From Hyaloraphidium curvatum SAG 235-1 (taxonomy: Eukaryota > Fungi > Monoblepharomycota), in the NCBI GenBank assembly GCA_025558095.1, contig JAIVFI010000024.1, forward strand, positions 434,001-498,000: a stretch of DNA of 64,000 nt, written 5' to 3'. Below, piece after piece: positions 1,216 to 58,600 of this stretch (its first letter is position 1; every line of letters starts with the position of its first letter). Made by a program: the position numbers and the translations under genes. The notes under the pieces were generated by a model, which saw nothing but the letters and a program-made list of their open reading frames with translations, was not told where the DNA came from and made no database searches.

Positions 1216-1650
1216 GTTTGCGTTCCGCGAACTGGCGCGATGAAGTCAACGCCTGGGCGTGGGGCGCCGTTCGCTGCTCCGTTGCGGACGCCAAAGCAGT
1301 CGGGCTCTCCAAGAGTCCGCGGTCCGAGCACGACGAGGGCCGAGCGTCCTCGGACTGGTTACCAGTGTCGACCTGGCTGATTGGACCCCGCCGAGCCGTG
1401 CGGAAAGGCGCGGGAGGACGCGAACAGCTGCGGTCTATCGTTTCGCTTCCCGTTACCCTCTCCCTCCGTGAGTAGCCGTGGAGGACACGGCGCGAGGCCA
1501 GCAGCGTTTTCACGCGCCGAGTGCGCCGCCTGGCCGCCGCCGCGCGAGCGTGAGGGACGCAGCCGCGCGCCCCGCCGGCCCTCGCGCGCCCTGCCGGCCC
1601 TCGCGCGCCCGCCCTCCGCCCTCCGGCGCTGACGCCCCCGCAGCGCCGCC

Positions 1651-3850: not shown

Positions 3851-4025
3851 TGGGAGCAGTGTAATTTAGGCCTCGGCAGCCGCATGCTGAATGAAATACG
3901 CCTTAGAATGTCTCTTGCTTGCCGTGGTCTGGAGATCGAATGAATGGGGAGACGACGGTTGAGGCCGCAGGGGTTGAGGCTGTCAGACCAGTCCCGCCCT
4001 CCGATGCCGGCCTAACGCCGTCTGA

Positions 4026-5624: not shown

Positions 5625-5717
5625 CGTGGTCTAAAGGTTGAACGGACGAAAGTGGCTTATTCACGGGGACGGAAGAGCGTATACCCTGTAGTACGGCTCT
5701 ATTTTCTTGGGCTGATT

Positions 5718-14755: not shown

Positions 14756-14835
14756 TCTTGCTGTTTTGGTCGGTGATTGACGACACGGCCGGCAATCGGG
14801 GAAGGAAGCAGGAACAACCGGCCCGAGGCACCGTA

Positions 14836-24018: not shown

Positions 24019-25451
24019 ATGAAGCGGGCGCTGGAGTCGGCCGGACGCGGCCTCGGGGCGGCTGCTGCGTCCTCCGGCTCTGCCGCTGGCCGGCTCCCCG
24101 CTCCCCCGGGTGCTGCAACGCCCCGGTGCGGAATCGCGCCCCCGTCTCCCGCACGAACCGCCACCTCCCAGCGGTCCTTTGCGACCGTGGTGCCGCCGCA
24201 CCGGACGCCAAAGGTGGCCGCGATGCGCAGCTCCCTCTGGAATGGGAGCCTGACCCCCGGTCGGCACAGCGGGACCCCAACTTTGTCAAGATCGTCGACG
24301 TGTCCCCCCGGGACGGCCTGCAGAACGAAAAGACCCTGATCCCGGTCGAGGTCAAGGTTGAGCTCATCAACAGGCTCGAGGACGCGGGGCTGAGCTACAT
24401 CGAGGCCACGTCGTTCGTGTCGCCGAAATGGGTTCCTCAGGTAGGCTGGCCCCGACCCGCCGCCAACCGTTGGAGACTCACGGGCCGTCGAACGACAGAT
24501 GGCCGACGCGCCGGACGTGCTGCGGTCCATCCGGGTGGACCCCCACGTCACCATGTCGGTGCTCACCCCGAACGTCAAGGGGTTCGAGAGCGCCATGGCA
24601 GCGGCCGAGAAGATGCACGAGGGCAAGAAGCACCTCGAAGTCGGTGGGTGGTCACCCTGTCGTCACTGCCCCCGTTGGAAACCCCTGACGGCACCCCCCA
24701 GCAATCTTTGCGGCCGCGTCCGAGAGCTTCTCGCGGAAAAACATCAACTGCACCATCGCAGAGAGCCTGCAGCGGTTCGAGGACCTGATGAAGCTGGCCA
24801 AGGAGGCGAACGTGCCCGTCAGGGGGTGGGTCGGAACGTCTTGGCAGCGCCTGCCGAGCTCACTCCCCGCGCCTCAACCAGCTACATCTCGTGCGTCCTG
24901 GGCTGCCCGTTCGAGGGCGACGTCAAACCCTCGGTCGTCGCGTCCGTGGCCGCCAAGCTCATGGACATGGGCTGCCACGAGGTCAGCCTCGGGGACACGA
25001 TCGGCGTCGGCACGCCCGGCAAGATGAAGGCGCTCATCGACGAGGTCCGGCACGCGGTGCCGGTGGAGAACCTGGGCGCGCACTGCCACGACACGTACGG
25101 GCAGGCGCTGGCCAACATCCTGATGGCGGTCGAGGTGCGTTGCTCCCCGGGTGGTGCTTGCATTCCTCCAGTTGACGTGACGTTCTGGTCCAGAACGGGG
25201 TCCGCGTGGTGGACAGCTCGGTCGCGGGGATCGGCGGCTGCCCGTACGCGCCCGGCGCCACGGGCAACGTCGCGACGGAGGACGTGGTGTACATGCTGCG
25301 GGGCATGGGCTTCGAGACCGGGGTCGATCTCGACAGGCTGGTGGAGACTGGCAACTTTATCTCGCAGAAGCTGGGGCGGCGCACGCTGTCGCGGGTGGGC
25401 AACGCGATCAACGCGCGCAAGGCGCGGGCGGAGGCCAAGGCCAGCGCTTGA
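24019..25451 (+). CDS. HMGCL: Hydroxymethylglutaryl-CoA lyase, mitochondrial
   Basis: [68 protein letters not shown]; Arg/Ser/Ala-rich presequence. Confidence 0.97.
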
Positions 25452-25532: not shown

Positions 25533-26870
25533 ATGCAGGCGCACCGGAGCCGGATTCCCTCCGCGGCGGGCGCGCCCGGCGACACGTTCCAGAGCAAGCT
25601 GGAGCGGCTCGAGGAAATCCGGCGGCGGCGTCTCGAGGTGCGCGCGACGCCGCGCACCACGCACCGCGCTCCCCGCTGACCCGCCGCGCAGCTCGAGCGC
25701 TCGCTGTCCGCGCTCGCGGCGCCCGCCGCCCCCGCACCCGCGGTCTCCGCACGGCCCGCGCTGGCGCCGGCCGCCGCCGTGCTGAATGCCGCGCCGCCGT
25801 CGCGCATCCCCGCACCCGCAAAGCGCGCGACCGCGCTGCCGCTGCCGGCGCTGCCGCCACCGAAACCCGTCAGGCTGCTCTTTGGCAAGGAGAACGTGGG
25901 GGCAGCACAGGCAGTAGCGCCCGCCCCCGCGGAGGCCGCGAAGCCGCCGGCCGTGCCGGCCCCGCTCCCCACTGCTGAACCCGAACAGGAAGCTCCCGTT
26001 GCTCCCCCCGCAGACCCTGCGATTCCCCCGTTTGAACCCCTTCTTGCCGATGTTATTGAGCCGGCGGCCGAACCGGACCCCGAAGGAACGCCGTCTGCGG
26101 ATTCTATTTCGGAGGAGCCAGCGATACTCGAACCGTCGTCGCAGACGGAAGAGGCGGAGGAGGTTCGCGAACCCGAAAGCCCCCCTCAGAGCCCCGCTCC
26201 CGCGGTTCTAACCAGCCCGCCCAAGCCTCTCATCCCTCCCGCGGGCCCTTCTGGCGGTGGTCGCGCCAACGCACGTGCCAGGGCTCTGCAGCACGAGCAG
26301 ACGCCCTACCACAGCCGATCGCTGCGCCTGCGGGCCTTGGCCGCCGCGGCCGATCCGCCGCAACCAAAGGCCAAGACGGCCTCGGACAAGGCCGACGAGT
26401 GGGCCGCCGCCACGCGCAAAAACACCATGGCCAACAAGGGCCACCACGCGAAGCTCATCATCACGCTGGTGCATCGCGACGGACCCCGGCCGCCGTCCCC
26501 CAGCCAGGCGCTCCGGGAGCGCAACTTGGACTTTAGCGCTCTGAAACTTTCCCAGACGGAGGACGATCACGGGGTGCACGACGGGGCCCCGGCCGCGGAC
26601 GGCAAGAAGCGGGTCCGGTGGACCGCCAACGCGGTCATCGAGCCGACGCCTGCCAAGGCCCATCGGCCGGCCCGGAAGGAACCGACTGCTGCCGAGAATG
26701 CGGCCCAGCGATCCTGCCTGCGGCAAGCGGGCGTTGGTGCGGATGGGGCAGGCGCTGGCGCCGACGTCCCGCTTTCCCCGCCGATCGTCACGGTGCAGCG
26801 CTTTATTTGGCTCGAGCCGGCAGCTCCGGTACAAGTGGCGCCCGCATCGGCGAAACGAAAGAAGACATGA
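25533..26870 (+). CDS. Pro-rich hypothetical protein with RVxW motif
   Basis: Short first exon spliced (GAG|gtgcgc...cgcag) into ORF 25779-26870; TRKNTMAN...GPRPPSP, KKRVRW, basic C-terminus. Confidence 0.65.
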
Positions 26871-31483: not shown

Positions 31484-33460
31484 ATGGCGTCCGGCCGCGT
31501 CATCGCGCGGCTGCCGCAGCCGCGGGCCGGGCTGCTCCGCGCGCGCGCGCCGCCGCAGCCGCAGGCGCCCGCCGACGACGGCAGCGGCACGGCCCCGCTG
31601 GGCGCCGCCGGCGCGCACCCGCCGCCCCGCTCCTCGTCGTCGTCGGCGGCGCAGTCGTGGAAGGCGCCCGGCTCGGCCGCATCGGACAGGCGGCCGGACC
31701 TGAAGCGGCCCGCGCCCGCAATGGGCGACGAGAACTCGTACAGCGGCTCGCGAGCCTCGCGCCGCTCGGACCGCAGCGAGGACGCGTACGAGCGGCCGGC
31801 AAAATTCCGGGCCGTCGACGTGCAGCGCACCAGGGTGCCCGGCGACAGGGCCGGGGCTCCGGCCGCGGGTGCCATCCCCCGGCGAGCGGACATGGATGTT
31901 GATGTTCGGGACGACCGGGACGACCGGCGCAAGCGGCCTGCGCTCGGGCATCATGCCGTCGTGCCCACGGCGGAAACACGGCGGCCACAGCAAGCTGCGA
32001 CTGTCGCATCTTCTGCTTTGGCGCCCCTGGGAACTTCGCGCGTCCCCGAGCCCGCCAGCTACCGCGCGTCCACAGTTCCCTCCGCGGCGGCTGCTCCGCC
32101 GATGCCAAGTCGCAGTTTGGCATCGGGGCACTTGGAATCTGGCCGCGCTGTCGCAGAGAACCGCTTGACCGTGCGGCCGCGCAGCCCGCACGCGGCGAAC
32201 CGGACGGACGACCCGAAGCGCACTCACGTGGCACCCCTTGCCACCGCGTCTTCTAGAGCGGCTCTTGCAGCCGTGGCGAACTATGTGCCTCGGCCGAGCG
32301 CGGCTCGCGCAGGACGGACCTCATTGCCCTCCCTCGGCACTGCATTGGTGCCGGTCAGCCCGCGGCGGATCCAGACCGTGCCCAAGCCGCAACCTGCCAG
32401 GGTGCGGCGGCAAAGAATAGCGCACGATCGCGATGCCGCGCCCGAGCGGGTGGAGCCCCTGATACGGCAGCCGGCTCTGGAGCACCGCTTCTCGTCGCTC
32501 ACGGCGCTGGGCCCCATGGTGGAGCTGGATCCCCTGATGGTGTCCGAGTATGCCGACGACATTTACTCCTACTGGCGGTCGCTGGAGCTGAAGCTCCTTC
32601 CGGATCCGGGGTACATGCACAGACAGCCGGAGCTGTCGTGGGACATGCGCGCGACGCTGGTGAACTGGATGGTGCAGGTCCATGGCAGGTTCAAGCTCCT
32701 GCCCGAAACCCTGTTCCTCTCGGTCGGGCTCCTGGACCGCTTCCTCTCCACCCGGCCGGTGATCCTGTCCAAGTTCCAGTTGGTCGGCATCTCGGCGCTC
32801 TTCATCGCATGCAAGTTCGAGGAGATTTACTTCCCCAGCATCAACGACTTTGTCTTTGCCTGCGACGGCATTTACACCGTGGACGAGATCCGCCGCGCGG
32901 AGCGCTACATGCTCGGGGGCTTGAACTGGGAGATCGGGTCCGCCGGCCCGCTCAACTTCCTCCGCCGGCTGAATCGGGCCGACAACCACGATGCACGGAT
33001 TCGCGTCCTGGGCAAGTACCTGCTGGAAGCCACGATCGTCGACCCCAGGTTCCTGGCCGTGCAGCCCAGCGCGATGGTCGCGGCGTCGGTCTGGTTGGCG
33101 CGCAAGATGATCCACTGGGAGGAGGCCAGGCAGAGGCGGGCCAGCGGCGCGAGCTCAAACGGCAATGGAGCCGGGAGGGAATCGTCGTCGGTCGAAATCG
33201 AATGGGTGGGTCCGACCGGATGCTGGCGCCTCGAACCATGACTCACGTCACATCACGCTTTCCAGACTCCCCTGCATTACAATCTCTCCGGCCAATACAC
33301 GGAACCCGAACTCATACCCTTGGCGCAGGCCATCCTGGACTGCGCCTCCAAGCCGCAGAACCACGCCGCCGTCTTCGAGAAGTACGCCGACCAGGCACAG
33401 TACTTTGGGGTCAGCGACTTTGTGCGGCGGTGGTGCCTCTCGAACGGATTCGCGAACTAG
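31484..33460 (+). CDS. B-type cyclin
   Basis: Cyclin box MRATLVNWMVQVHGRFKLLPETLFL, FQLVGISALFIACKFEE; D-box RAALAAVAN; intron ~33206-33265. Confidence 0.93.
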
Positions 33461-39644: not shown

Positions 39645-42101
39645 TAGAATAGAATAGTATTGGTGACCCGGACCTGCCCCTGGCTTGGCCGCTGTTACAC
39701 CATGAGTTTGCTGCTAATTGCAAAGTTCATCGTCGTCGTGTGTCTTTTTCATTTTCCCAGTTTTCCTGTCCTTCATGGACTTTGAGATGAAGCTGGCAAT
39801 GGAGTTGAGGGCCTTCTCCATCCTTCTGCCGCCTCGCTTTGATTGTGGGCTCGAACTCCTTGATGCTAAGAGCCCAGAGCCACGTCTCCATGTTCCACTC
39901 GCGGCCTAGTGCTTCCAATCTAGTCTGCAGCTTCTGGCGCCGCTCCGCATTTGCTGAGCAGTGAAACAGAAAGTGTTGTTCGTCTCCAATGTGCTCAGGG
40001 TCATGCTTGCACGTTCTCTGCTGCACCTCAAGTCCTTGGTGCCTGCCTGTCTCCACCTCCAGGTCGTGGGTAGAGCACAGCAACTTTTGGACATCCCTCC
40101 GGTGCTTCTCCACCCGGATCAGGGATGGTCCGATGTGGCCAAAGGTCATGTCACACATCCTCCAGAAGTGCAGCTTGTATCATTATCCTTGAGCTTCTGG
40201 GCATTGATCTCCCTGAACTTGCCCTTCACAAGATTCTCCACAGTCTCCTTGGGCCATGAGAAAGTGTCCTTCTCCCACATGCCGGTTGAGGTCAGCTGAT
40301 ACCCCAGAAGCTTGAAGCTGTCAACCCTCTTCAGCTCCTGGTCCCTGTACATGAGCTTTACACGGTGAGGTATCCTCCTGGCCATCCACTCTGTCTTGCT
40401 GACGTTGATCTCCAGCCCATTGGCACTGGCATATGCAGACAAAAGATCCAGCTGCATCCTGGCATCCTTCACCGTCTTCGAGATCAAAGTGGTGTCGTCT
40501 GCAAAGAACAGAGCCAGCAAGCTGACTATCCTCTCCTGATCCTCTTCCTCCTCAGACACCATGCCCAGATCCATCCCTTTTGCACCATTGGCCTCCATCA
40601 TGAAAGCAGTGATGTCGTTGATGAACAAGATGAAGAACAGCGACGAGAGAGGGTCCCCCTGCTTCACTCCGGTCAGGAACTTGATGAAGTCTGACTTGGT
40701 CCCGTCTTCATCCCGGAGCCGTCCCCACACGCGCCCGAACGCCATCTCGAACATGTCAACAACCTGTTTGGGTACACCCATCTCCTCCAGTTTCTGCCAT
40801 AACCTGGGGTGTTCCACCGTGTCAAAAGCCTTTGTGAAATCTACAAAGACCATGATCAGCTTCTCCTTGCGTGCCTTGGCCAGGGAGAAGAGTGCCTCGG
40901 CAAGGAACACTGCATGAAGGGTCAATCTCCGTGCACGGAATCCAAACTGCGAGCCTTCCAGCAGCTTGTTGCACTCAGCCCAGGGAGCTAGCCGAGCGTT
41001 CCAGACCAGGGAGAAGACCTTCTCCAGCGTCCTCTCTATGCTGATGCCTCGGTAGTTGCCAGCCACGTTCTTGGGCCCCTTCTTGTGCAGCATCACCAGC
41101 AGTGTCTGGCCCCAGTCATCCATCTTGACGCCATTGAGCACGTCGTTGAGGAGGTTGACAACAGCTTGCTTCAGTACTGCAGTCCCGTACTTGACGAACT
41201 CGAGCCGGATCCCATCCTCGTCCTTTGCCTTGCCGTTGGGGGCCTTCTTCAAGACCCTCTCCAGCTCCTTGAGGGTGATGGGGCGCAGCAGGTCTCCAGA
41301 AGGCGTGATCGTGGCCTTGGGAAGTGGTGGAAACGTGAGCCTTGGATCCTCCTCGATCTTGGTCACGTATTCGGCGCTGGCGACCATCTCCATGTGGCGC
41401 ACCAGCTCTGCAAAGGGCACGGGGTTGCCCTTGCGCCTTGCGTGAGCCTTTCCAAGCAGCTGGTAGTACCCCTTAGGCTCTCGCCTGAAGAGTCGCTCTA
41501 GCAGCTTGGAGTTCTCTCGCTCAGCAACCCTCCGCATCCTCTTCTCCAACTTCTTCCGCTCCTTCTCCAGCTCCCGCGTCTTCCCCTGGTACTCCTTCTT
41601 CCACTCGTCCTTCTCCATGAGGGATCGCAGCTCAAGAAGGCGTGACAGCTTCCGATCGATCTCGGCCCTCTCTGCCGAGTCCGCAAAGCCGTTGAGGAAC
41701 TTGTCCGCCTCTTCGTGTACGCTGACCTTGTCGTACTTCTTCTTTGCGACCTTGTTCACCGCTGCCATGATCTGGATGAGCCGGTTGCACTTGTCGGATC
41801 CAGCTTGAAGTTGCTCGTACTCTTGCATTGCCTCCTTGACCCAGGGCTCGTCGTAGAGGTTTCGCATTATTGCGAGGAAGTGGAAGTCGCACGGCACGGG
41901 CTTGCAGTGCGGCTTGTTCTCCTTCGCAGCTGGTCGCACGAGGTTGGCCTTGATGGTCAGGCTCAGGGCCATGTGGTCTGAGGTGACGACCCAGCCTTCC
42001 TTCACAAATGCAAGCTGGGTGACCGTCCCGTAGCGGCTCTGCGGCACGATTGCGTAGTCCAAGGTGCTGTCCCGCTTGCCATCCTTTCCTGCGCGAGTTG
42101 T
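39645..42101 (-). mobile_element. 5'-truncated LINE copy 1 (partial APE + RT) with internal deletion and 3' frameshifts
   Basis: NYRGISI, QFGFR, FVDFTKAFD, GVKQGDPLS, FFADD; near-identical to 50030-52668; (TAGAA)n tail at 39645. Confidence 0.95.
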
Positions 42102-42814
42102 AGTCCGCGTCCACGGTCCAACCCCGAGCAACCCCAAGCACCCCACGATAACCTGCCCGGGGGATAACAAGGGCCATTGGACCGGGTTCCGGGCAGCGTT
42201 CGGCCAAGCTCGACACGAAACGGCGATTTGTGGGAATTAAAGAAAAGGGATTGTCCTGCCGGGGGGAAACTTTTGACCCCAACCTCCTATTCTATCGAAT
42301 AGTCAAAAGGCAACACCTTCTCGTATGGCATGTGCCTGGCTCCAGCACCTCCGTTGCAGCATTGGCCCCATGAATGTCACTCTGGCCCCGTCTTCATTCT
42401 GGTAACCTGCCAGGACAGTGACCAAGATTGGTGAACCTTCAGACATGCTCGGATTGTAAACCTATGATCAAGAAAGTCTCTGCCATGGTCATTCGTGTGT
42501 TCGACCCCTACCCTCAAGCTCATGGTGCTCAGGCTGTCTCTTGCTCAGGTTGGAGGTGCAGCACAGCGGCTTCTGCAGGACCCAACCAACCCCCCAGCCC
42601 ATGTTCCCCTCCCCTTGTTAGACCCCTTCCCCTCCCCAATCTCATTTGAATGAAAGGATGGTAGTGGCCTTTGAAGCTCCAACAAACTCGGACACATTAG
42701 TGGATGGGGACCCACGGTGCCCAAGTCGAGTCCTCCAAGGGGTTGGGCACTACTGTAGACTGTAACACAGACAAACGATTGGCTCGAAAATGCATGCCCC
42801 TCAGTGGGCTTGAA

Positions 42815-43011: not shown

Positions 43012-43148
43012 TAGAATAGTATTGGTGACCCGGACCTGCCCCTGGCTTGGCCGCTGTTACACCATGAGTTTGCTGCTAATTGCAAAGTTCATCGTCGTCG
43101 TGTGTCTTTTTCATTTTCCCAGTTTTCCTGTCCTTCATGGACTTTGAG
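43012..43148 (-). mobile_element. Severely 5'-truncated LINE copy 2 (3' end only)
   Basis: Matches 39650-39786 including the TAGAATAGT tail. Confidence 0.92.
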
Positions 43149-43541: not shown

Positions 43542-43758
43542 TGTTGCTGGCGATGGATGGATGTGTTTGGAGCCGTTGGATCGAGTTGGAGTTGGCCTTG
43601 GAGTTGGATGTTGGACTTGGATGGATGGGTGGATCTTGGCTAGACAATAACCTAGGAGGGCGGCTCTAAGAAAAGGGAGAATAACACAACAAACACCAGG
43701 AACGCCACCTGCTTCATCCGCACCTGTCTCTGGGCGCCTGTGACCAGGGGTCTTTGAG
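43542..43758 (+). repeat. 5' LTR (portion shared with the 3' LTR; true end may be slightly downstream)
   Basis: One mismatch versus 49817-50032; internal GTTGGA/GATG microrepeats. Confidence 0.93.
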
Positions 43759-43819
43759 ATTAAGAGTCTCACCTGCTCTGACACGTACCTGCTACCCCTG
43801 GAAGCCCGCCCGCGACAGG

Positions 43820-45124
43820 ATGACAGCCAATGATGCCGACAAGCCCATCCTGCTCAACACCGGTGATAACATGGTCCAGTGGGACCGCAAGGCCCCCATC
43901 TACCTCAACAAGCTCGGGGTGTACGAGTACGTCGTCAACAACGTCCTCAGCCTCGACTGGCAGCTCGAGCAGGCTCGCAAGCGGGCCGCTGAGCGCGGCA
44001 ACGCTCCAGGGCTGACCGACCGGCAGAGGGATGCCATCCTTATCGAGGAAGAGAAGGCCGCGCACGCGACCCTCACGGAACACAAGTTCAGGACGACGGC
44101 CGAAAAGGCCTACGGCGAGCTCATGTTGATGCTCGACGACGTCCTCCAGGAAGCATTCGACGAGCCCAAGACGGCCTACGACCTCTGGATCGCGATTCAC
44201 AAGAAGTTCAAGGTTGGAAAGGCGCGCCTGGTACACGCGTCCCAGGTCCGCGTAAACAAGTGGCAGTGGGACGCTTCAAAGACTGTGGACCAGAACTTCA
44301 ACGAGCTGCTCAGCATCAAGTCAGAGAGGGCTGCGCACAAGAAACCGCTCTCAGACTACGACGTGGCCCTGATGGTGACATTCACCGAAGGTTTTCCGTT
44401 CGCGGAGCTCCAAGGATTCTGGGGCCGAATCATTGACGAGGACGGACACTTCGACCAAGATGGCAAGAGCGAGAGTATAACGTTCTCGTTCAATGGCATG
44501 CGGGATGCGGCTAACACGGCCCAAGGAAACAAGAAACCGGATGCACCTGTCAAGATGACAGTCCCGGCGACGCTCCCGCCCCCTGCTGGATTTGGACCCG
44601 GTTTCGCTGCCTATCAGCCGCACCAACAAGTTCCCCGTGGTGGTGGCAACCCCAGTCGGCCTCCGCAGCGCCCCTGGTACGAGCACGGTCGCTACGCTCC
44701 GTACCCCAGCTACAGGCCGAGCGGCATGGCTCCTATCCAAGGCCAGGGCCATGATCCTCGGATGCGCGGCCGCGGGTTGGCACGTGGCGGAGGCCGCGGC
44801 TACTACCCCGCACCGAGGCCGATGGGCGGCCCAAGCTACCGCCCGGCTGGCGCTGCCGTTTGGAGGCCGGCTCCGGTGACCAGTGAGATCACCTGCCGCG
44901 AATGCGGCAAGCCGGGACACGTGGCATCGGCGTGCCCCGACAAGAAGTGCCACAATTGCAACGGCAAGGGGCACGTACAGCGCGAGTGCCCGTCACCGCC
45001 CCAGCAGCCGTACGCCATGCTGGCAGATGCCCAGATGGAACACAGCGAGGGTGAGAATCGGGGGGGGATCCTGGGCCGAGGTGCCCGCGCCGCGAAGGGG
45101 CCGCGGTGCTCGGCGCTTGGTTGA
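43820..45124 (+). CDS. gag: Copia Gag (unspliced form; possible spliced extension to 45858)
   Basis: TAYDLWIAIHKKF, RGG-rich region, CRECGKPGHVASAC and CHNCNGKGHVQREC. Confidence 0.9.
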   Translation: MTANDADKPILLNTGDNMVQWDRKAPIYLNKLGVYEYVVNNVLSLDWQLEQARKRAAERGNAPGLTDRQRDAILIEEEKAAHATLTEHKFRTTAEKAYGELMLMLDDVLQEAFDEPKTAYDLWIAIHKKFKVGKARLVHASQVRVNKWQWDASKTVDQNFNELLSIKSERAAHKKPLSDYDVALMVTFTEGFPFAELQGFWGRIIDEDGHFDQDGKSESITFSFNGMRDAANTAQGNKKPDAPVKMTVPATLPPPAGFGPGFAAYQPHQQVPRGGGNPSRPPQRPWYEHGRYAPYPSYRPSGMAPIQGQGHDPRMRGRGLARGGGRGYYPAPRPMGGPSYRPAGAAVWRPAPVTSEITCRECGKPGHVASACPDKKCHNCNGKGHVQRECPSPPQQPYAMLADAQMEHSEGENRGGILGRGARAAKGPRCSALG

Positions 45125-45287
45125 AAAGGAGGGCCGCGGGCTCCGCGTCGCGAAGGGCCGAGGGCCAGACGCTTGAAGAAGAGGGCCGCGGGCTCTGCGT
45201 CACGAAGGGCCGAGGGCCAGACGCTTGAAGAAGAGGGCCGCGGGCCCCGCGTCGCGAAGGGCCGAGGGCCAGACGCTTGAAGAAGAG
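45121..45287 (+). repeat. 52-nt tandem repeat, ~3.2 copies, then degenerate GGCCGCGGGCCC motifs to ~45410
   Basis: Units start at 45121, 45173, 45225, 45277 (ttgaagaagagggccgcgggc...gggccagacgc). Confidence 0.95.
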
Positions 45288-45858
45288 CGCCGCGAAGGGG
45301 CCGCGGGCCCGGCGTGTGGAGTGTGGGCCGCGGGCCCGGCGTCGCGAAGGGGCCCGTGTGCCCGGTGCCTGAGGCCGCGGTTGCCTGCCAGGAGGGGCCG
45401 CGGGCCCAGCGCTAGGTGTGGAGTTTGAGTGCGAGAAGTGACGGGACGCTGGGCACATCACCAGCCGCCGACGCGGGGGACCAGCGTCGGTGGCTGGTCG
45501 CGCACGAAACCTCGCACCCTCGTCCCATTTGATGCTGATCATCTTTCTCATCTTTCTCCTCCTTTCTCCTCTCGCCCATACTTGGTGCCATGCCTGCTCT
45601 TCCCTCCGATGCCGTTTCTTTTTGTTCATCCGGTAAGATGGCAGTGCCGCGAACGAAGGTAACTCACCCGCCCCGCACCCCGATCGCTCTTCATCGCAGC
45701 ATTGCCTGACAGCCTTTGGCTTCCTGGGATACGGCTCGATGCATGGTGACAGTGAGGGAGCCGATTTTGGCTATGTCGGCTACGACCAAGAGTCCGGCGG
45801 CGGAGTGCCTTACGGCGACGCCTTCGGAGCGACCTACGGCGACGGCTTCGACAACTGA

Positions 45859-48800
45859 CTACGTAGCGGCGGGGAGGCCGCTGCGATGCCGACCGTGACG
45901 GCCAACGCCGTTTCGGGGGAGGACATCGACGGCGGCATGGTACAAGCTCAACACGCTCGCGCGTACATCAACCATATTCGAGCCAACAACTGTGATTCCT
46001 TCTTCGATTCTGGCGCGAGCCGCAACTCTACCAATACCCTAAGCGACCTGACCAAAGTCTACTCGATACCCAAGTTCGTTGGCATGGACTTACGGGGCCC
46101 GTGGAGGTGTCACAGGCTGGCACCATGTACGTGCGTTTTCGCACGAGCGGACCCGTTGTTCGGCTTGACAACGTTCTTTTCATGCCGAGCACACCGTGCC
46201 GCCTGTTTTCGGAAACGGCATTGGCCGCCGCCGGCGTTCGATCCAGGAACTGCTACCTGGCTGACAAGGAGATGCAGAAACAGCTATACCTCGTGGACGG
46301 CACGGAGCTGTGCGTTCTTCCTCAGCAAAACGGCGTATTCCCGATGCCGATCGAGGTCGTCAAACCGGGGTCAACGTCGCAGGCCATGTGGGGACTCACC
46401 GACGCGGATTTGATCCGACTGCGAGGGGTACGCATGTCACGCCTCTACGATCGCCACCTGTGGCATGCCCGATGTGCGCACGCTCACATTGAGCGCATCC
46501 GGATAGCGCAGAGGTCGGGTGCGGTGCTTGGCCTTGAGAACGTCGATCTGGGCCCCGAGTCGGAGGTTATCGAGTGCGATGTCTGCCTGCGCGCGAAGCT
46601 GACGACCGCGCCGTTCCGCCCCTCGATGCGTGAGCACGTCAAGGACGTCATGGATCTCTGGCACGTTGATCTCAAGGGCCCGGTCGATATCACTTCCGTG
46701 CACGGCGACCGCTACTGGATGGACGTCAAGGACGAGTGGTCGCAGCAGCTTTGGTCGATCCCCCTGAAGACCAAGGACAAAGCAGCACCTCTCCTTCAGC
46801 ACCTCATCGTGTGGGCCGAGACGCAGACTGGGAAACGCCTCAAGCACCTCCAGTCTGACCAGGGTACCGAGCTCGGGCGGTGGAACGCGCGGGAGCTGGG
46901 CTGGTTCCAGACCTGGTTACGTGAACGAGGCACTCACTTCCGGGTCTCCATAGCCGATACGCCTCAACAGAACGCGGTACCCGAACGCGAGCATCGTTCC
47001 CAGGTCGAGGGGGTACTTGCGCTCTGCATCCAGGCTGACGTCGAGAAGCGTTTCTGGAACTATGCCCTCGCATACAAGACTGAGGTCCGCAACATGCTCC
47101 CAACGGTGAAGACGATGCAACGGGGCGCAAACGGAACGGTTACCACGCCGCATGAGCTATGGACAGGGACTAAACCCGACCTGTCACGCCTCCGCACGTT
47201 CGGGTCGGAGTGCTGGTACGGTATCCTCCCCAGCCAGCGCAAGGCTCTGGACGACCGTGCACACCGTGCGATCTTCCTCGGTTTCCCGAAGCACCTGAAG
47301 GCGTACACCTTGCTGGATCTAACCACAGGCAAGATCGTCCATGCGCGATCAGTGGTCTTCAACGAGCGCTATTCTAAACGTTCGCCCGGCTCTTTCCGCG
47401 ACATTGATGCGCTGGGCAAGCATCGCCCTTTTGCTCTCGTACCTCCCCGCCTTCCTCATCGGCTCTCAAAGCCGGCGGATGCGGCAGTCGACGAAGACAG
47501 CGATGACGATCAGCGGACACCACCAAGGGATGCGGGGACGGGACTTCAGGAACCTGCTCAGCGCAATGAGGCAGGAGAGGCGTACGAGTGGGAGCTTCTT
47601 GAGGAAGAGATTGAGTACCCGCTCGACGTGGAGCAGGAGGCAACGGACGCTGGTAATGGCGATGAGCTGGGTGCTGCGCCGCATCCCCTCGCTGGACCTG
47701 ATGATGGTCTGCCAGACCCTCTCATCATGCCCTACGCCATGATCGCCACTCCGCTGACGTGCTCTCCTTCCTTCCGCTTCCCAGCCTTCGAGATGTGGCG
47801 CATACCAGGTGCCAGCGCCCCTGACCCAGACACGAGCCCGGTGACCCTGCTGTCGGTGCACGATGTCACCGTTCCGCGCACATACAACGAATCGCAGAGG
47901 TCACCGCATGCGGCTCAGTGGGAGGAAGCGCGGCAGGAGGAGAACAAGTCGATTCTTGAGATGGGTGTGGTCGAGGAGACGGAACTACCCGCTGGTGACG
48001 AGGACAAGGTGGTGCCCTCGCACTACGTCTACGATGTCAAGAAGGACCAGAACAACAACGTTACGCGCTTCAAGGCACGCTTGGTGGCGGATGGAAACCG
48101 CCAGTCCGAGCAAACGTACTACGATACGTTCGCTGCCGTTCCTAACCAAGTTGTCTTCCGCCTCTTCCTCCTTCTTGTTGCCACGCTGGGACTCCTCTGT
48201 GATCACTGGGACATCAAGACGGCGTTTCTGCATGCTCCACTGGACTACACTGTCTACATCAGACCGCCTCCGGGTTGGCGGTTCCTCAAGGAGTCTTCCT
48301 CGCGCACGGTGCTTCGCCTGCTAAAGAGTCTCTATGGATTACGGCAAGCGATGCGCTTGTTCCTTGCAATGCTTGATCATTTCCTCCGCCAGGCTGGATT
48401 CGTGAAGCTGGCCTCCGAGAGCTGTCTCTACGTGCGCTTCGCGGCCGGCCGCATTATGATCATCTTTGTCTACGTCGACGACTTGCTGGTTGCTGCCACC
48501 TCACAACTGGAGATTGACGAGTTGTTTGGCAGCCTCAAGCAGCATTTCAACATCAACTCGCTGGGCTCTGTCACTTACTGCTTGGGCGTGCACATCCGTC
48601 GCGACACCGGCACCGGTACAATCTCGTTGTCGCAGACGGCGTACATCGACCGCGTCCTCCGCGAGTTTGGATTCACGCGTGATGTTCCCAGCAAGGAGAC
48701 GAAGTCTGCTCTCACGCCAATGCGACCGGATGCACTCCAGACGCTGCGCCCATTTGATCCCGCGGTGTTTGACAGCCTGCCGACGAAGATCCAAGACGAC

Positions 48801-49553
48801 GTCAAAAGTTTCAACTACAAGGGCCTGGTTGGATCTCTACTTTGGATTGCCATCACGACACGGCCAGATATTGCCTTTGCCGTGATCTTTCTTTCTCGCT
48901 TTGCCAACAGCTTCGGACCTCTTCACATCAAGGCGCTTCGAGATGTCTTACGCTACCTGCGCCGCACCCGTACCTATGGACTTGTTCTTGGCCGTCGTCC
49001 TGCGTCTGGCGATTGCTTGGATCTCTGTGCTTATGCAGATGCCGATTTTGCTGGCTGTGTGATGACCCGCAAGTCGACCACGGGTCTCGTCATCCTCATG
49101 GGTGCTTCCAGTATTGCTTGGCTGACCAAGCGGCAATCCATCGTTGCACAGTCTACTACGGAAGCCGAGTATGTTGCTATGGCGCATGCAGTTCGCAACA
49201 TTCTCTGGCTGCGCTCCATCCTGCAGGAACTTGGCTTTGCGTGGACGACACCTACGCGACTTTTCGAGGACAACATGTCTGCTGAACAACTCGCTCGTGA
49301 TCCTAAGTTTCACGAGCGGACGAAGCACATCGATATCAAGTACCACCTGGTTCGCGACACTGTGCAAAATGGAACGATTGAGACTGCACGGGTGGTGTCA
49401 GACGACAACCTTGGGGACGGCTTTACCAAGCCTCTAGCTCCGGCCCTTTTTGAACTTTTCCGTGCGCGCATTGGTGTTGTTGACCTTGATACGGGTTCGG
49501 CTGAGGCCAGCGTTCTCTGCGAGCCGGACCCTGCCGGGAATCTCTGCCCGTGA
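45859..49553 (+). CDS. pol: Copia Pol (protease, integrase, RT, RNase H) with one frameshift near 46080
   Basis: FFDSGAS in ORF 45886; then ORF 46101-49553: WHARCAH..CDVC, HVDLKGP/SDQGTE, DIKTAFL, LYGLRQA, YVDD, YADADFAG, TEAEY, HIDIKYH. Confidence 0.93.
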
Positions 49554-49805
49554 TGAGCCTGAGGCTAGCGGGCAGCCGTTCCTTGGCTTCTGGGGGAGTC
49601 TCCCCTACGTGTACCTCTGGATTGTATTGTTTCTTGTACTTTCTTTGCATGTATGGTCTCTGGGGGAGCTTTTTGTACGGAGATTGGATCGCCCGGTCTT
49701 GGGGGGAGGTGTCATCAGGGAGCCTGGCCTAGGCAGCCCAAGGAGCTCAATCCCGGGGCGTGGAGGAGCATGCGGTGGGGGACTCCACTCGATCCACTCG
49801 CCTCC

Positions 49806-49816
49806 AAATGGGGGAG
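49806..49816 (+). promoter_or_regulatory. Polypurine tract (plus-strand primer)
   Basis: AAATGGGGGAG directly before the TGTTG of the 3' LTR. Confidence 0.8.
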
Positions 49817-50032
49817 TGTTGCTGGCGATGGATGGATGTGTTTGGAGCCGTTGGATCGAGTTGGAGTTGGCCTTGGAGTTGGATGTTGGACTTGGATGGA
49901 TGGGTGGATCTTGGCTAGACAATAACCTAGGAGGGCGGCTCTAAGAAAAGGGAGAATAACACAACAAACACCAGGAACGCCACCTGCTTCATCCCCACCT
50001 GTCTCTGGGCGCCTGTGACCAGGGGTCTTTGA
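49817..50032 (+). repeat. 3' LTR, truncated at the junction with a LINE
   Basis: Matches the 5' LTR up to GGTCTTTGA, then switches to LINE 3' sequence; no terminal CA. Confidence 0.93.
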
Positions 50033-50079
50033 CCCGGACCTGCCCCTGGCTTGGCCGCTGTTACACCATGAGTTTGCTG

Positions 50080-53000
50080 CTAATTGCAAAGTTCATCGTT
50101 GTCGTGTGTCTTTTTCATTTTCCCAGTTTTCCTGTCCTTCATGGACTTTGAGATGAAGCTGGCAATGGAGTTGAGGGCCTTCTCCTTCTGCCGCCTCGCT
50201 TTGATCGTGGGCTCGAACTCCTTGATGCTAAGAGCCCAGAGCCAGGTCTCCATGTTCCACTCGCGGCCTAGTGCTTCCAATCTAGTCTGCAGCTTCTGGC
50301 GCCGCTCCGCATTTGCTGAACAGTGAAACAGAAAGTGTTGTTCGTCTCCAATGTGCTCAGGGTCATGCTTGCACGTTCTCTGCTGCACCTCAAGTCCTTG
50401 GTGCCTGCCTGTCTCCACCTCCAGGTCGTGGGTAGAGCACAGCAACTTTTGGACATCCCTCCGGTGCTTCTCCACCCGGATCAAGGATGGTCCGATGTGG
50501 CCAAAGGTCATGTCACACATCCTCCAAAAGTGCAGTTTGTCGTTGTCCTTGAGCCTCTGGGCATTGATCTCCCTGAACTTGCCCTTCACAAGATTCTCCA
50601 CAGTCTCCTTGGGCCATGAGACAGTGTCCTTCTCCCACATCTCCTTCCCATCTCCGCCACCATAGTATACAAGTAGTTCCCTCAGGAAGGCAGCCCAGTT
50701 CCAGGACCCCTTCAGTGCCTCGATCTTGAGCTCTTTGTAAAGTAGGTACAGCGCAGGATCCGCTGTTTTGATGCACATGAGGAACTTGAGTGCCGACTCG
50801 TGGTCATGAACTGCAAGGGGGTACTGGCCAGTGATCGCATACAGACAGGCCAGGGAGGTAGACTTGGGCAGATGAGTGACGGCACGAAGAGCCATGCATG
50901 TCACTTTGTCCCTGGTGCTTTCCCCGGCAAGGTACTCCTCCTTCGGCATCTCAACAATGAACGGGTTCCCATATTGGCCCACTGCCTTGACCTTTGTGTT
51001 GTAGAGCTTGAGCTGGAGGTCAGGACTCATCCCAGGCTGCTCCCTGAAGTCGCGGAGCCAGAGCCCATAAGCAGCGTTCATCTTGGCCTCTCTGCCATGC
51101 ACATGGTCCTTGCTCCGGCCGGTTGAGGTCAGCTGATACCCCAGAAGCTTGAAGCTGTCAACCCTCTTCAGCTCAGTGATGTCGTTGATGAACAAGATGA
51201 AGAACAGCGACGAGAGAGGGTCCCCCTGCTTCACTCCGGTCAGGAACTTGATGAAGTCTGACTTGGTCCCGTCTTCATCCCGGAGCCGTCCCCACACGCG
51301 CCCGAACGCCATCTCGAACATGTCAACAACCTGTTTGGGTACACCCATCTCCTCCAGTTTCTGCCATAACCTGGGGTGTTCCACCGTGTCAAAAGCCTTT
51401 GTGAAATCTACAAAGACCATGATCAGCTTCTCCTTGCGTGCCTTGGCCAGGGAGAAGAGTGCCTCGGCAAGGAACACTGCATGAAGGGTCAATCTCCGTG
51501 CACGGAATCCAAACTGCGAGCCTTCCAGCAGCTTGTTGCACTCAGCCCAGGGAGCTAGCCGAGCGTTCCAGACCAGGGAGAAGACCTTCTCCAGCGTCCT
51601 CTCTATGCTGATGCCTCGGTAGTTGCCAGCCACGTTCTTGGGCCCCTTCTTGTGCAGCATCACCAGCAGTGTCTGGCCCCAGTCATCCATCTTGACGCCA
51701 TTGAGCACGTCGTTGAGGAGGTTGACAACAGCTTGCTTCAGTACTGCAGTCCCGTACTTGACGAACTCGAGCCGGATCCCATCCTCGTCCTTTGCCTTGC
51801 CGTTGGGGGCCTTCTTCAAGACCCTCTCCAGCTCCTTGAGGGTGATGGGGCGCAGCAGGTCTCCAGAAGGCGTGATCGTGGCCTTGGGAAGTGGTGGAAA
51901 CGTGAGCCTTGGATCCTCCTCGATCTTGGTCACGTATTCGGCGCTGGCGACCATCTCCATGTGGCGCACCAGCTCTGCAAAGGGCACGGGGTTGCCCTTG
52001 CGCCTTGCGTGAGCCTTTCCAAGCAGCTGGTAGTACCCCTTAGGCTCTCGCCTGAAGAGTCGCTCTAGCAGCTTGGAGTTCTCTCGCTCAGCAACCCTCC
52101 GCATCCTCTTCTCCAACTTCTTCCGCTCCTTCTCCAGCTCCCGCGTCTTCCCCTGGTACTCCTTCTTCCACTCGTCCTTCTCCATGAGGGATCGCAGCTC
52201 AAGAAGGCGTGACAGCTTCCGATCGATCTCGGCCCTCTCTGCCGAGTCCGCAAAGCCGTTGAGGAACTTGTCCGCCTCTTCGTGTACGCTGACCTTGTCG
52301 TACTTCTTCTTTGCGACCTTGTTCACCGCTGCCATGATCTGGATGAGCCGGTTGCACTTGTCGGATCCAGCTTGAAGTTGCTCGTACTCTTGCATTGCCT
52401 CCTTGACCCAGGGCTCGTCGTAGAGGTTTCGCATTATTGCGAGGAAGTGGAAGTCGCACGGCACGGGCTTGCAGTGCGGCTTGTTCTCCTTCGCAGCTGG
52501 TCGCACGAGGTTGGCCTTGATGGTCAGGCTCAGGGCCATGTGGTCTGAGGTGACGACCCAGCCTTCCTTCACAAATGCAAGCTGGGTGACCGTCCCGTAG
52601 CGGCTCTGCGGCACGATTGCGTAGTCCAAGGTGCTGTCCCGCTCGCCATCCTTTCCTGCGCGAGTTGTTGCCCCCGGCTCGAGGCGCCCATTCAGGATCA
52701 CCAGCTCCTCCTCGTGGCACAGTGCAAGTAGCTGTTTCCCCCTCCGATCCGTGCGCTGCTCCGACCGGATTACACGCTTTCCGAAGCTCGTGCCACGCAC
52801 GTCGCTGTTTGCCTCGCTTATCCCCACATGTGCGTTCAGGTCCCCGATCACGATCGGCATGTCGCACCCAGCCACAATCCCTGAGAACCTCGACCACATC
52901 TCGTCCTGCGTGACTATGTCCTGCGTTGGCGTCGGCGGTATGTACGCCCCCAGCACGTTCACTCCGCCGACTTGGATCTGCACGACGTCCAGGATCGGGT

Positions 53001-53316
53001 CCAAGTCTGTCCGTACGGTGTGCGGTAGCTCCTTTCGCACAAAGACCGTCAACCCTCCTCCACCATGCTCCGAGCAGCTCTTCTCATAAACCTCGAACGT
53101 TTCCAGTACCGCGGCAACCTCTGCGCGGATGTCGGTGTTGCTCATATGCTCCTCCCAAGTCCGCTTCTCGCCTTTGCCCGTCCACCTTGCTTCAGCGAAA
53201 ACGACGATATCGTACTCTACAATGTGTAGCAGCAGCTCACGTATAAAGAGGCTCTTCTCGAGCTTCCGCTCGACGTTTTGGTACAGTATCTTGAGGCATG
53301 TCCGAGTCTCGCTTTC
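50080..53316 (-). CDS. LINE ORF2 endonuclease/reverse transcriptase, lacking the FADD segment
   Basis: Open from the ORF1 stop to 50080; first ATG at 53145; 270-nt deletion at 51174/51175. Confidence 0.9.
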   Translation of the reverse strand, partial: ESETRTCLKILYQNVERKLEKSLFIRELLLHIVEYDIVVFAEARWTGKGEKRTWEEHMSNTDIRAEVAAVLETFEVYEKSCSEHGGGGLTVFVRKELPHTVRTDLDPILDVVQIQVGGVNVLGAYIPPTPTQDIVTQDEMWSRFSGIVAGCDMPIVIGDLNAHVGISEANSDVRGTSFGKRVIRSEQRTDRRGKQLLALCHEEELVILNGRLEPGATTRAGKDGERDSTLDYAIVPQSRYGTVTQLAFVKEGWVVTSDHMALSLTIKANLVRPAAKENKPHCKPVPCDFHFLAIMRNLYDEPWVKEAMQEYEQLQAGSDKCNRLIQIMAAVNKVAKKKYDKVSVHEEADKFLNGFADSAERAEIDRKLSRLLELRSLMEKDEWKKEYQGKTRELEKERKKLEKRMRRVAERENSKLLERLFRREPKGYYQLLGKAHARRKGNPVPFAELVRHMEMVASAEYVTKIEEDPRLTFPPLPKATITPSGDLLRPITLKELERVLKKAPNGKAKDEDGIRLEFVKYGTAVLKQAVVNLLNDVLNGVKMDDWGQTLLVMLHKKGPKNVAGNYRGISIERTLEKVFSLVWNARLAPWAECNKLLEGSQFGFRARRLTLHAVFLAEALFSLAKARKEKLIMVFVDFTKAFDTVEHPRLWQKLEEMGVPKQVVDMFEMAFGRVWGRLRDEDGTKSDFIKFLTGVKQGDPLSSLFFILFINDITELKRVDSFKLLGYQLTSTGRSKDHVHGREAKMNAAYGLWLRDFREQPGMSPDLQLKLYNTKVKAVGQYGNPFIVEMPKEEYLAGESTRDKVTCMALRAVTHLPKSTSLACLYAITGQYPLAVHDHESALKFLMCIKTADPALYLLYKELKIEALKGSWNWAAFLRELLVYYGGGDGKEMWEKDTVSWPKETVENLVKGKFREINAQRLKDNDKLHFWRMCDMTFGHIGPSLIRVEKHRRDVQKLLCSTHDLEVETGRHQGLEVQQRTCKHDPEHIGDEQHFLFHCSANAERRQKLQTRLEALGREWNMETWLWALSIKEFEPTIKARRQKEKALNSIASFISKSMKDRKTGKMKKTHDNDELCN

Positions 53317-55624: not shown

Positions 55625-58600
55625 ATGGGGCCGCCTCAACGCGGCACCCGGACGCCCCGAGGCGCGGCGGCCCGTCTGTCGAATGCTCCGGGGGGCATGG
55701 TCCCCAGCGCGTTCGCCAGCGGCGGGGCCCGGGCGGTGGGGACGCCGGGTTCGCCGTCCGCCGGACGCGCGCCTCGCGGCGTGCGCATTTCCCGGCTTGC
55801 GAGCGGAGACCAGCTGGACAACGATGTTGTCCGCCATTTGCTTGAACCCAGCGTCCCTCTTTCTCCGGTCGCCCTGGCTACTTCGCGGTCCAACCCCGCC
55901 GCCGCCGCTCCCCAGGTCGCCGGAGCGGGCTTCGGGACGGGTGCCGCCGCTGCTTCGGGTTCCCAGCCTGCACAGGCGTCACAGGCGTCTGGCATCTCGA
56001 GCTTCATGCGCGCCGAGGCCGAAAAGGGGAGGGCGGACCGCTTCGCGAGCGACATCCAGCTCCTGTACAACAAGCTCAAGGCGGAAAGGGAGAGGAAGAG
56101 GGCAGAGTACATCCGACAGGGCAAGATTGCCGATCCGGAGGCGAAGCAACAACTGCAGGACGCCATTGATCTCGTGGGGGAGTGCCCGGACATGTGCCCG
56201 GAGTTTGAACGCGTCGACCGCGAAATGAGCGGTACGGTGGACCCTTTGGAAAAGGCAAGCTGCGGTGCACGGCTCGCTTCTCCCGGCGTGACGCCTCGCA
56301 CGCGCCGTAGGACGAGTTTGGCAACATTTCCGCTCAAAAGGCCGTGAAGAGGTTCAAGCGGTCCTCGGCGGGCGATGGACAGCCGCTCCCCTGCGACGTG
56401 CGCCCGCCGCCCGTTCTACTTCTGACCATCGACTACCTGATCCGGGAGGTCATGGGGAATCACCCTCTGGAGACGTGCCATCGATTCGTCGGGGATCGGC
56501 TGCGTGCTGTTGCAAACGACTTTATCGTGCAGAACTACCGCGGCAGGGAAGCCATACGGTGCACAGAGGTCATATCTCGGTACTACATAGTGGCTCTGCA
56601 CGCGCTGGGCGAGATGACGGAGGATCAAGGGGTCAGCCACAAGCAGGACTTGAAAATGCTGATGGACAGTGAGGCGACGGTGATGTGCCGCAGGACCGAC
56701 TCCGACCAGTAACCCCTTGTCGTCAGATCTGAAAACCCTGACGGAAATGTACCAAGACTTCCATGCCATGGAACCCGGCGAGGTGCTCGACAACGAGGCG
56801 GAATTCTACGGCTACTTTCTCCTCGCGCACCCGACCTCGCACTCCGATGTCGGCTTCTTGGAACGTACAGTCAGCCGTCGGATTCTTGTGTCTCCGGAAG
56901 TTCGTCTGGCCATCGAGCTCAGGGAGCTCATGCAGCGATCGCAGCGAGCCGCCGTGAGGGGATATCGGTCGGAAGGGAGCCACAGGTCCATGGCGACGTT
57001 CTTCAGGCGCTTGCGGGAAGACCCAAGGTCGACAGCGCTGGTGGCCATGGTCGCCGAACTGCAGTTTGGAGACGTCCGCCGCGACGGGCTCCAGGCGATG
57101 GATCGGGCATACAAGCCCTCGTACCATTTCCCCCTGCAGACACTGGCTGATTGGATGGGGCTCGACTCTGTCGAACAGGCCTTTGCGTGGGTCGAAGAGT
57201 GTGGCCTCGAGGTTTCGTCGGCCGCCGGATCGCCAGGAGGGTCGGCTTTGGCGCACGTTCAGTTCGGGGCCAAAGGACCCGAGGGAAAGAGCTCGTTCGT
57301 CTTCCCCGACGACGCGACCGTACGAAGGCTCAGCCGAGCTTCAAAGCGCATCATAGCATCCAAGGTCGCAAGGACCAGTTTGCCCGCGTTGGTGCTCGGC
57401 GAAGGCGTGGTTGCGACCTCGCCACCGCGCTTCACCACGGCAACGCCACCTTCGCTTCGGGCTCAGTCCCTGTCATTTACGCTTAAGGGCCCCCCTGCAA
57501 ATATCCTGCCCGCTGTCGAAGCGCCTCGCGTCGCTCAAGAGCCTGCAGTAGCGCCGTCGACCGTCCCAAAGCCGCTGGACGTTATGTTCCGCCAGCCACT
57601 GCGCCAGCCACAGAAAGTGTCGGCCGCCACGACATCCTTCGGCGAACGACCACCTTTGGTTGCGCCTCCCACCGTTGCCCCTCCGCCGGACTTGTTTGCT
57701 CCGCAGAGGCCAGCGTCGCCGCCGAACACGTTTGGCTTCGCGGTCGCATCAGCGACCACCCAATCAGGCCCGGCTCCGGTTGCGAAGCCGCATCCACCAG
57801 CACCGATTTTGGCTATCAAGGAAACTGTGGCGATCAGCCCTTCTCGCCCGGCGGAAGCGTGGCCCGCTGCGCGGGTCGATGCCGGGCCCGAGGAACTTGC
57901 GGCAAGAGCCAATCTCGTAGCCAGGGTGTCTGCGTCCATATTCGCGGAGACTTTGGTCCATGAAACGGTCTCCATCTGCAATGCTGTGGTCGCGGAAGCG
58001 TCAGCGGTGTGGACGAGCCTCCGCACGGTGTCGCTGGCCAATTTCCTCGCCGACAAAATGCTGGTTGTTGTGACAAAGGACCTCGCATCGCGCGTGCGCG
58101 CGTCGTCTTTGCGTGCCAGGCGCCTGCAAAGATGGGCGTTCCATCGTTGGAAGAGCCTCAACCGAGAGCGGCGCGCCGATCGCGCTCGCGAAAGGAACGC
58201 GGAAGAGGCTGCGGCTATGGAGCGGACGAAACTTCTGTCCGCCCTTGGATCCTTGACCCTCATGACGGCCGAAAACGTCAAGCTTAACTCGTCGTTGGAC
58301 GTGCGTCCCAGAACTCGGTTCGGGGAGCTGGATGGGACCGCGACCGCGCAGCAGGAAGCCGTACAGGGCCATTTTGTCGATGATTTGGCCGTCTCGATCT
58401 ACGCCGACTACAGGCACAGTCCCGTACATGCTCGAGGGGACGACGTTTTGCGGAAGTTGGTGGTTTCCACTCCGTCGACTCTCGCCCCAGAGTCCCAGGA
58501 GGAATGGGCCTTCACTCGCCAGCTTCTAGAGCTCTTCCGGCCCACGGACACGGGATTGCTGTCTGCACTTTCCGATGATGGCAAAACCGTGGTCGAGGAT

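Follow-up and report, generated by a model that had tools for sequence, protein, structure and literature searches.

The window analysed here, a stretch of 64,000 nucleotides (nt) from the fungus Hyaloraphidium curvatum (contig JAIVFI010000024.1 of assembly GCA_025558095.1, positions 434,001 to 498,000), carries on its forward strand, at 43542-50032, a Ty1/copia retrotransposon in which two long terminal repeats (LTRs) surround an internal region. Both LTRs are 216 bp long and, like all features of the element given below, lie on the forward strand; the 5' LTR (43542-43757, TGTTG...TTTGA) differs from the 3' LTR (49817-50032) at a single position. A polypurine tract at 49805-49816, AAATGGGGGAG, stands directly before the 3' LTR and precedes it in all copies of the family, and the stretch after the 5' LTR, GATTAAGAGTCTCA..., is likewise kept in all copies. 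Elsewhere in the window, an ABC-transporter ORF (12818-14842, minus strand) matches an NCBI protein of H. curvatum at 100% identity, followed by a hit from Gonapodya. The internal region encodes protease, integrase, reverse transcriptase (RT; Pfam RVT_2) and RNase H in the same order as in Ty1/copia. As a first-pass annotation of this DNA had recognised, gag and pol do not form one open reading frame (ORF): unspliced gag stops in a spacer, and pol lies in another frame. From the comparison of genomic copies we give even chances to the reading that gag and pol are split by a spliceosomal intron, followed by a stop codon that is read through.

The unspliced gag ORF occupies 43823-45124 in frame 2, and its coding exon (43823-45050) comprises 409 codons plus one base, ending on the first base of a codon. 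Two CCHC zinc knuckles are encoded at 44891-44990 (Pfam zf-CCHC matched twice, E 9e-10), and a match to Retrotran_gag_2 (E 1.5e-5, 25 bits) falls just under the curated Pfam cut-off of 27 bits. A word-indexed protein search with Gag returned no relatives, and an exhaustive HMMER search with the gag exon against 1.84 billion representative proteins gave zinc-knuckle matches only, at query positions 350-395. The N-terminal domain of Gag (43823-44890) has no detectable relative among these 1.84 billion representative proteins, the sub-threshold Pfam copia-gag match being the only one.

Downstream, pol extends over 45859-49553, with the protease motif FFDSGAS at 46000-46020 (DSG at 46006-46014). 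Pfam recognises RVT_2, rve and SH3_retrovirus in the pol of the window copy, rve lying upstream of SH3_retrovirus, and in the intact pol of a sister copy, C37, Pol_BBD (residues 49-126), SH3_retrovirus (436-505) and RVT_2 (715-942). A 1-nt deletion between 46081 and 46082, missed in the first-pass annotation, is private to the window copy, nine of nine sisters having an extra T there; it breaks the protease/pol frame, and the window copy is therefore dead. In other copies pol is open directly after the stop, for 1231 amino acids (aa) in C37 and C31b, 1215 aa in C1 and 1218 aa in C30. The closest pol relatives in protein collections are at most 36% identical, the element's proteins were absent from the protein collections searched, and no relatives of the family were found outside the H. 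curvatum genome.

A survey of this genome (31.9 Mb, 55 contigs) for sister copies identified about ten copies that reach the gag-pol junction, belonging to at least three lineages that differ by 10-17% in gag and pol. The window copy forms a near-identical group with C37 and two copies on C31 (C31a and C31b); C1 on the one hand and C30, C43, C11, C42 and C27 on the other represent diverged lineages, and C23 is a fragment with about 70% identity. The donor, the spacer, the sequence CGGTAAG at its end and the frame of the linker that follows are common to all copies that reach the region. In six copies from three lineages the LTR pairs differ at 0-2 positions, and perfect 5-bp target duplications flank C1 (GAATC), C43 (GTTCT) and C35 (CTTAG); none was found at C37 or at the window copy, whose flanks read GTACA and CCCGG. 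C1 combines identical LTRs and a target duplication with its open pol. Between lineages that all carry the candidate intron and the stop, variable sites are distributed over the three codon positions as 52/49/98 in gag and 101/71/325 in pol, and gag indels are multiples of three. Judged from these comparisons, gag and pol are under purifying selection between lineages, and the family is active now or was so recently. Several defects are private to single copies (the frameshift of the window copy, a premature TAG in gag of C37, deletions in C35 and C31b), and C43, C35, C11, C27 and C42 are broken or truncated. Because young copies are present and gag and pol are under purifying selection, the layout most plausibly belongs to a working family and not to decay. 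In the other copia families of the genome, whose pol is only 28-32% identical, a single ORF spans 1643-1755 aa, so that the split layout is specific to this family.

Individual copies have rearranged in several ways. C30 (L026) is a mosaic, with a spacer 95-98% identical to that of C1 (L025) and gag and pol 96-97% identical to those of C43 (L028), which indicates that lineages of the family have recombined, as expected of co-packaged retroelement RNAs. C35 (L032, C35:152000-158000) lacks element positions 1645-4785, from the intron repeats into pol; with its identical LTRs and CTTAG duplication it may be a non-autonomous derivative that still moved. On C31 (L024, C31:203500-213499) two copies stand head to tail, the first with its 3' part (element positions ~4034-6493) inverted in place and the second lacking 394 bp of gag. 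The window copy and C37 are distinguished by a 144-nt indel in the 3' untranslated region (~49554-49814), the two being 99.8% identical elsewhere.

The spacer that separates gag from the downstream frame, 45051-45637, is 587 nt long and runs from G|GTGAGA to TAAG|. Its donor GT, at 45051-45052, is where the first-pass annotation had placed it, and GTGAG is kept in all copies including the distant C23 fragment. Left unspliced, gag of the window copy would continue for 24 more codons to a TGA at 45122-45124, and across copies these unspliced tails (24-69 codons) are unconserved. Spacer length ranges from 564 to 713 nt with no preference for multiples of three, the indels within it are not multiples of three, and stops occur in all three frames of six lineage representatives, which rules out translation through the spacer as well as ribosomal frameshifting. 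By this pattern the spacer evolves as non-coding DNA. Its 5' two-thirds have a GC content of 75-77% and contain a GC-rich 52-nt tandem repeat (45121-45294; 3.3 copies, TRF score 306), whose copy number varies among element copies and whose sequence is confined to this family genome-wide. We rejected the idea that the spacer is an independent repeat or an inserted element, since its repeats occur in this family only, and also that of an intron with an unusually stable fold (z = -1.58). The genome search turned up no copy that lacks the spacer, so the one-off insertion that the first-pass annotation had allowed for can be set aside.

The 3' third of the spacer exists in three unalignable versions, about 50% identical to one another, whereas the same pairs share 85-97% identity in gag, linker and pol. 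A CTRAY motif is nevertheless found in each version, and the pyrimidine-rich sequence leading to the same CGGTAAG is free of AG for 116-166 nt. A branch-like site followed by an AG-free tract had been described in the first-pass annotation; the site is present in the window copy (CTGAT, 45535-45539), while the pyrimidine-rich tract is longer than the ~95 nt given there and extends over 151 nt (45485-45635), making it the longest AG-free run in the element and the third longest on the forward strand of the window. Conservation resumes about 15 nt upstream of the AAG at TGTTCAT; the TTCAT within it (45625-45629) is conserved, lies 9 nt before the AG in the window copy and 9-10 nt before it across copies, and TGTTCAT could be a proximal branch site at this distance of 9-10 nt. 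The CTRAY motif and the AG-free zone together mark out a 3' splice region whose branch point is distant, kept through sequence turnover. We therefore regard it as probable, on sequence comparison, that the spacer is an intron.

A local reference is provided by seven very uniform host introns (24441-25193, 25638-25691, 33206-33265 and 56669-56726), which were inferred from frame continuity in four genes of the window, namely an HMG-CoA-lyase-like gene, a cyclin gene, SAC3 and one more. They are 54-60 nt long, end in CAG in seven of seven cases and carry an NTNAC branch motif 12-20 nt before the acceptor; CTGAC is branch-like in two of the seven. Their donors are GTGGGT (three times), GTGAGG, GTGCGT, GTGCGC and GTAGGC, a pattern that the element donor, GTGAGA or GTGAGC, matches. 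The cyclin intron, at 60 nt, is in frame and contains one stop. A short, host-like intron within the element, from GTAAG at 45634 to 45699, was considered and rejected, as it would require an upstream exon made of 150 nt of unconserved AG-free sequence.

The first AG after the tract forms the putative acceptor 1 (TAAG|, 45636-45637), within the CGGTAAG found in all copies and in C23. The TAA at 45634-45636 closes the linker frame upstream, and both the coding signature and sequence conservation begin at this acceptor. A second candidate acceptor, CAG at 45710-45712, is in frame with the first and lies 75 nt beyond it. As the first-pass annotation had stated, both acceptors would join gag in frame to a Gly/Tyr/Asp-rich segment, and they do so in every copy (AFGFLGYG...YGDGFDN in the window copy). 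This linker exon (45638-45855, frame 1) consists of a first part up to acceptor 2 (45638-45712) and a second part beyond it (45713-45855); from the G of AAG through the stop there are 222 nt, a multiple of three. The linker frame is open in all copies for 65-73 codons, with indels of 3 nt and 24 nt only, and has no Pfam match. Against C23 its first 34 codons align without gaps at 61% identity; among the 23 changed codons, 8 changes are synonymous in frame 1 compared with 2 and 0 in the other frames, and both other frames of the alignment contain stops. We conclude from this alignment that the linker is coding, and the coding signature favours acceptor 45637 as being used at least sometimes. 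In C23, a decayed and single fragment, the same frame runs from the TAA of GGTAAG into the protease with no stop.

The linker ends at TGA (45856-45858), which is in frame with FFDSGAS as first reported and is followed by CTA (45856-45861 together). A stop codon occupies this position in ten of ten copies: TGA in the window copy, C37, C31a, C31b and C1, and TAA in C30, C11, C43, C42 and C27, so that no sister has the sense codon that the first-pass annotation had named as a refutation, an outcome in favour of its reading. CTA directly follows the stop in every copy. Fungi are known to favour readthrough where UGA precedes C, CU or CUA, and the fission-yeast elements Tj1, Tosmo and Tcry share a strictly conserved GAA-TGA-CT at their gag-pol junction (PMC10085805). 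Three nucleotides after the stop, a 9-bp hairpin with a GGGGAG loop (45862-45885) appears in both the minimum-free-energy and the centroid structure. Its pairing survives three substitutions; in an alignment of six distinct sequences 98% of cells are paired, with GC, GU and AU all seen at one pair, an outcome that 324 of 500 shuffles equal. An ATG (45886-45888) directly follows the hairpin and is present in nine of ten copies and in the C23 fragment, C1 having ATC. Selenocysteine insertion and a reassigned stop codon were rejected, as the position holds TGA in some copies and TAA in others, and ordinary genes terminate in the normal way. Given the intron, we consider it somewhat more likely than not that the stop would be bypassed by readthrough and not by another mechanism.

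The nucleotide boundary directly after the hairpin and the ATG, 45888|45889 in the window, is also the point at which other elements interrupt two further copies, L034 on C15 (at ~5861) and L033 on C2 (at ~6734), and it may be an insertion hot spot or reflect a shared origin. The insert on C15 is a member of another copia family, and the remainder of the interrupted element lies 5.6 kb away, with a 5-bp overlap.

A number of observations weigh against an intron followed by readthrough. The main internal evidence of this kind is that the candidate intron is about ten times as long as the host introns and that its first acceptor is AAG and not CAG, although this could equally mean an intron built for inefficient splicing. 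The choice of acceptor is uncertain, since acceptor 45712 is more host-like (CAG, with TTCAT 19 nt upstream), and within the family the linker shows a weak excess of third-position changes (11/7/16). Half of the family copies carry UAA, a codon that is poorly read through. The covariation of the hairpin is not significant against shuffles, and the hairpin starts only 3 nt past the stop. The stop together with the following C spells CTGAC or CTAAC, which is the host branch-site motif and leaves its role ambiguous. Finally, in Tca2, the closest copia precedent, readthrough is not reproducible (PMC2194720).

In the expression scheme that we consider, the unspliced RNA would be the form that is reverse-transcribed, as every genomic copy keeps the intron, and it would encode only Gag with a short, unconserved tail. 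In the spliced RNA, gag would be joined in frame to the Gly/Tyr/Asp-rich linker of 65-73 codons ending at the conserved stop, and this UGA or UAA, followed by CUA and the hairpin, would stand in frame with protease, integrase and RT. Gag-Pol synthesis would then require splicing and, after it, translational bypass of the stop, most likely by readthrough, and each of the two steps would limit Pol relative to Gag. We infer the splicing of the spacer, the choice of acceptor and the readthrough of the stop from the genomic copies. The first-pass annotation had proposed three products (unspliced Gag, a longer spliced Gag, and Gag-Pol); of its reading, the comparison of copies supports an intron and a following in-frame stop as the layout with which the family works. 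As a tentative extension, which we hold with less confidence than the scheme itself, the two RNAs may divide the labour: the intron-retaining RNA would serve as genome and as Gag message, whereas the spliced RNA, never copied into DNA, would be the sole message for Gag-Pol, with a second gate at the stop. Within this division, the repeat-rich intron might carry a packaging signal, so that only unspliced RNA is packaged, and the Gly/Tyr/Asp-rich linker, found in the spliced RNA only, might act as an assembly or condensate tail.

Several other explanations of the junction have to be weighed. The first accepts the intron and proposes that ribosomes terminate at the UGA or UAA and reinitiate at the AUG at 45886, 27 nt downstream, so that Pol arises as a protein of its own. 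This AUG lies immediately 3' of the hairpin stem and is present in nine of ten copies and the C23 fragment, the occurrence of UAA in half of the copies suggests that it is of little importance which stop is used, and the nine codons between stop and AUG show no codon-position bias (1/2/1); this 27-nt stretch is, however, too short for a coding test. In addition, the young copy C1 has ATC in place of ATG, and free Pol would need its own route into particles. We consider reinitiation unlikely, and continue to favour readthrough of the stop after splicing.

Slightly less likely still is that the spacer is unspliced and intergenic, and that an internal promoter in the spacer or the junction drives a separate pol mRNA. 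The spacer does greatly exceed the host introns in length and has AAG, not CAG, at its end, a regulatory role of its GC-rich repeats is conceivable, and Tca2 has a minor promoter in its gag-pol junction (PMC2194720). Yet such a promoter would leave unexplained why GTGAG is strictly conserved exactly where coding conservation of gag ends, why an AG-free pyrimidine tract is kept in three unalignable versions and why both acceptors restore the frame from gag to the linker. The coding signature of the linker, in which no start codon upstream of the internal Met at 45739 is conserved, would also go unexplained, and the stop would still separate this Met from pol.

It is also conceivable, if quite improbable, that a second alternative splice removes the stop, with CTGAC or CTAAC as its branch site, yielding a doubly spliced Gag-Pol RNA with no need for recoding. 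The stop plus C matches the host branch motif CTRAC, CTGAC being branch-like in two of seven host introns, frame-preserving GT..AG pairs exist in all copies (45775-45876, 45775-45921, 45752-45946 and 45746-45946), and 'stop codon splicing' has been considered for Tca2 too (PMC2194720). The donor of the pair that would use this branch, however, is poor, as GTCGGC carries C at +3, a position held by a purine in seven of seven host donors, and the acceptor of this pair is GAG where host acceptors are CAG in seven of seven. Moreover, the first AG downstream of the branch (TAG, 45864-45866) would not keep the frame and has been lost from the TAA lineages, and the other GT..AG pairs have no branch motif near the acceptor and would delete coding-like sequence (6/4/14 by codon position after the AUG). 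A very improbable last alternative is that the layout is a non-functional relic of defective copies that another element mobilised in trans or that duplication spread: it can point to the protease frameshift of the window copy, the premature TAG in gag of C37, the missing target duplications of both and the five broken or truncated copies, but these defects are private to single copies whereas intron and stop are common to all, young insertions occur in each of three diverged lineages, pol is open for 1215 and 1218 aa in C1 and C30, gag and pol are under purifying selection between lineages, and the other copia families, 28-32% identical in pol, are too distant to be obvious helpers.

The surroundings of the window copy are complex. 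Its 3' LTR directly adjoins a LINE-like (non-LTR) element, at the 3' end of the latter, with an intact 1021-aa ORF on the minus strand (50080-53145), and 123-bp copies of the same LINE end, 99% identical, lie at 43026-43148 and 50030-50152, the former some 390 bp ahead of the 5' LTR. Another LINE copy, which is broken, occupies 40146-42282. Because the copia copy has no target duplication, the locus looks rearranged or recombined.

Retroelements are known to achieve much Gag and little Pol by frameshifting, readthrough, protein degradation or, in copia, a spliced Gag-only message. For the candidate intron, the closest analogue is Ogre, a legume element of the Ty3/gypsy superfamily, which likewise has an intron between ORFs. 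Steinbauerova and colleagues are said to have described in 2008 an Ogre intron between the gag-protease and RT/integrase ORFs that is spliced out to join them; genomic Ogre copies reportedly keep this intron, and partial splicing was reportedly proposed to set the Gag:Pol ratio. Ogre differs from the H. curvatum family in belonging to a plant Ty3/gypsy lineage and in having its intron after the protease, and we know of no report of an additional in-frame stop after the Ogre splice. Splicing between the ORFs of Ogre is also cited in PMC3735527.

Within the copia superfamily, the unspliced RNA of Drosophila copia, barley BARE1 and Arabidopsis EVD is a continuous gag-pol ORF, and splicing produces a Gag-only message (PMC5580714, PMC3735527), in agreement with the first-pass annotation, which had stated that Drosophila copia removes pol by splicing. 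The H. curvatum family resembles these elements in its superfamily, in the position of the intron near the gag/protease boundary and in the presumed mixture of spliced and unspliced RNA, but the logic, read from genomic copies alone, appears reversed, in that splicing would be required to reach pol. A short Gag message made by splicing, as in copia, BARE and EVD, is not what the sequence offers, since without splicing the gag frame of every copy closes within the spacer, after 24-69 codons of it.

For the stop, the fungal copia element Tca2 of Candida albicans provides the nearest comparison, as it too has a single in-frame stop between gag and pol followed by downstream RNA structure, but it has no intron. 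Tca2 Pol is made from the LTR-driven gag-pol RNA, yet its 300-nt junction did not direct readthrough in yeast, and the mechanism of bypass is unsettled (PMC2194720); thus, of the first-pass annotation's statement that Tca2 uses UGA readthrough, the UGA stands and the readthrough is not demonstrated. The Ty3/gypsy elements Tj1, Tosmo1-3 and Tcry1 and retroviruses of the MuLV type share with the H. curvatum family an in-frame stop followed by CT(A/G), but have no intron before the stop, which in them is always TGA; in Tj1 the stop is essential for transposition (PMC10085805). Our literature search found no paper that describes the combination of an intron and an in-frame stop in a copia element.

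If the proposed reading is true, splicing to reach pol with the stop as a second gate would be a new combination for the control of Gag and Pol, and the two-RNA scheme, if it holds as well, would be the mirror image of the splicing strategy that Drosophila copia and plant copia elements have in common by conservation. The host is an early-diverging, chytrid-grade fungus whose mobile elements are almost unstudied, and the family would lend itself to asking how an intron can be retained by an element that is reverse-transcribed, how splicing copes with an intron ten times as long as is normal for the host and whether early-diverging fungi read through UGA-CUA and UAA-CUA. It also holds a lesson for annotation, as elements of this kind look 'broken' to ORF-based tools, though they are probably functional.

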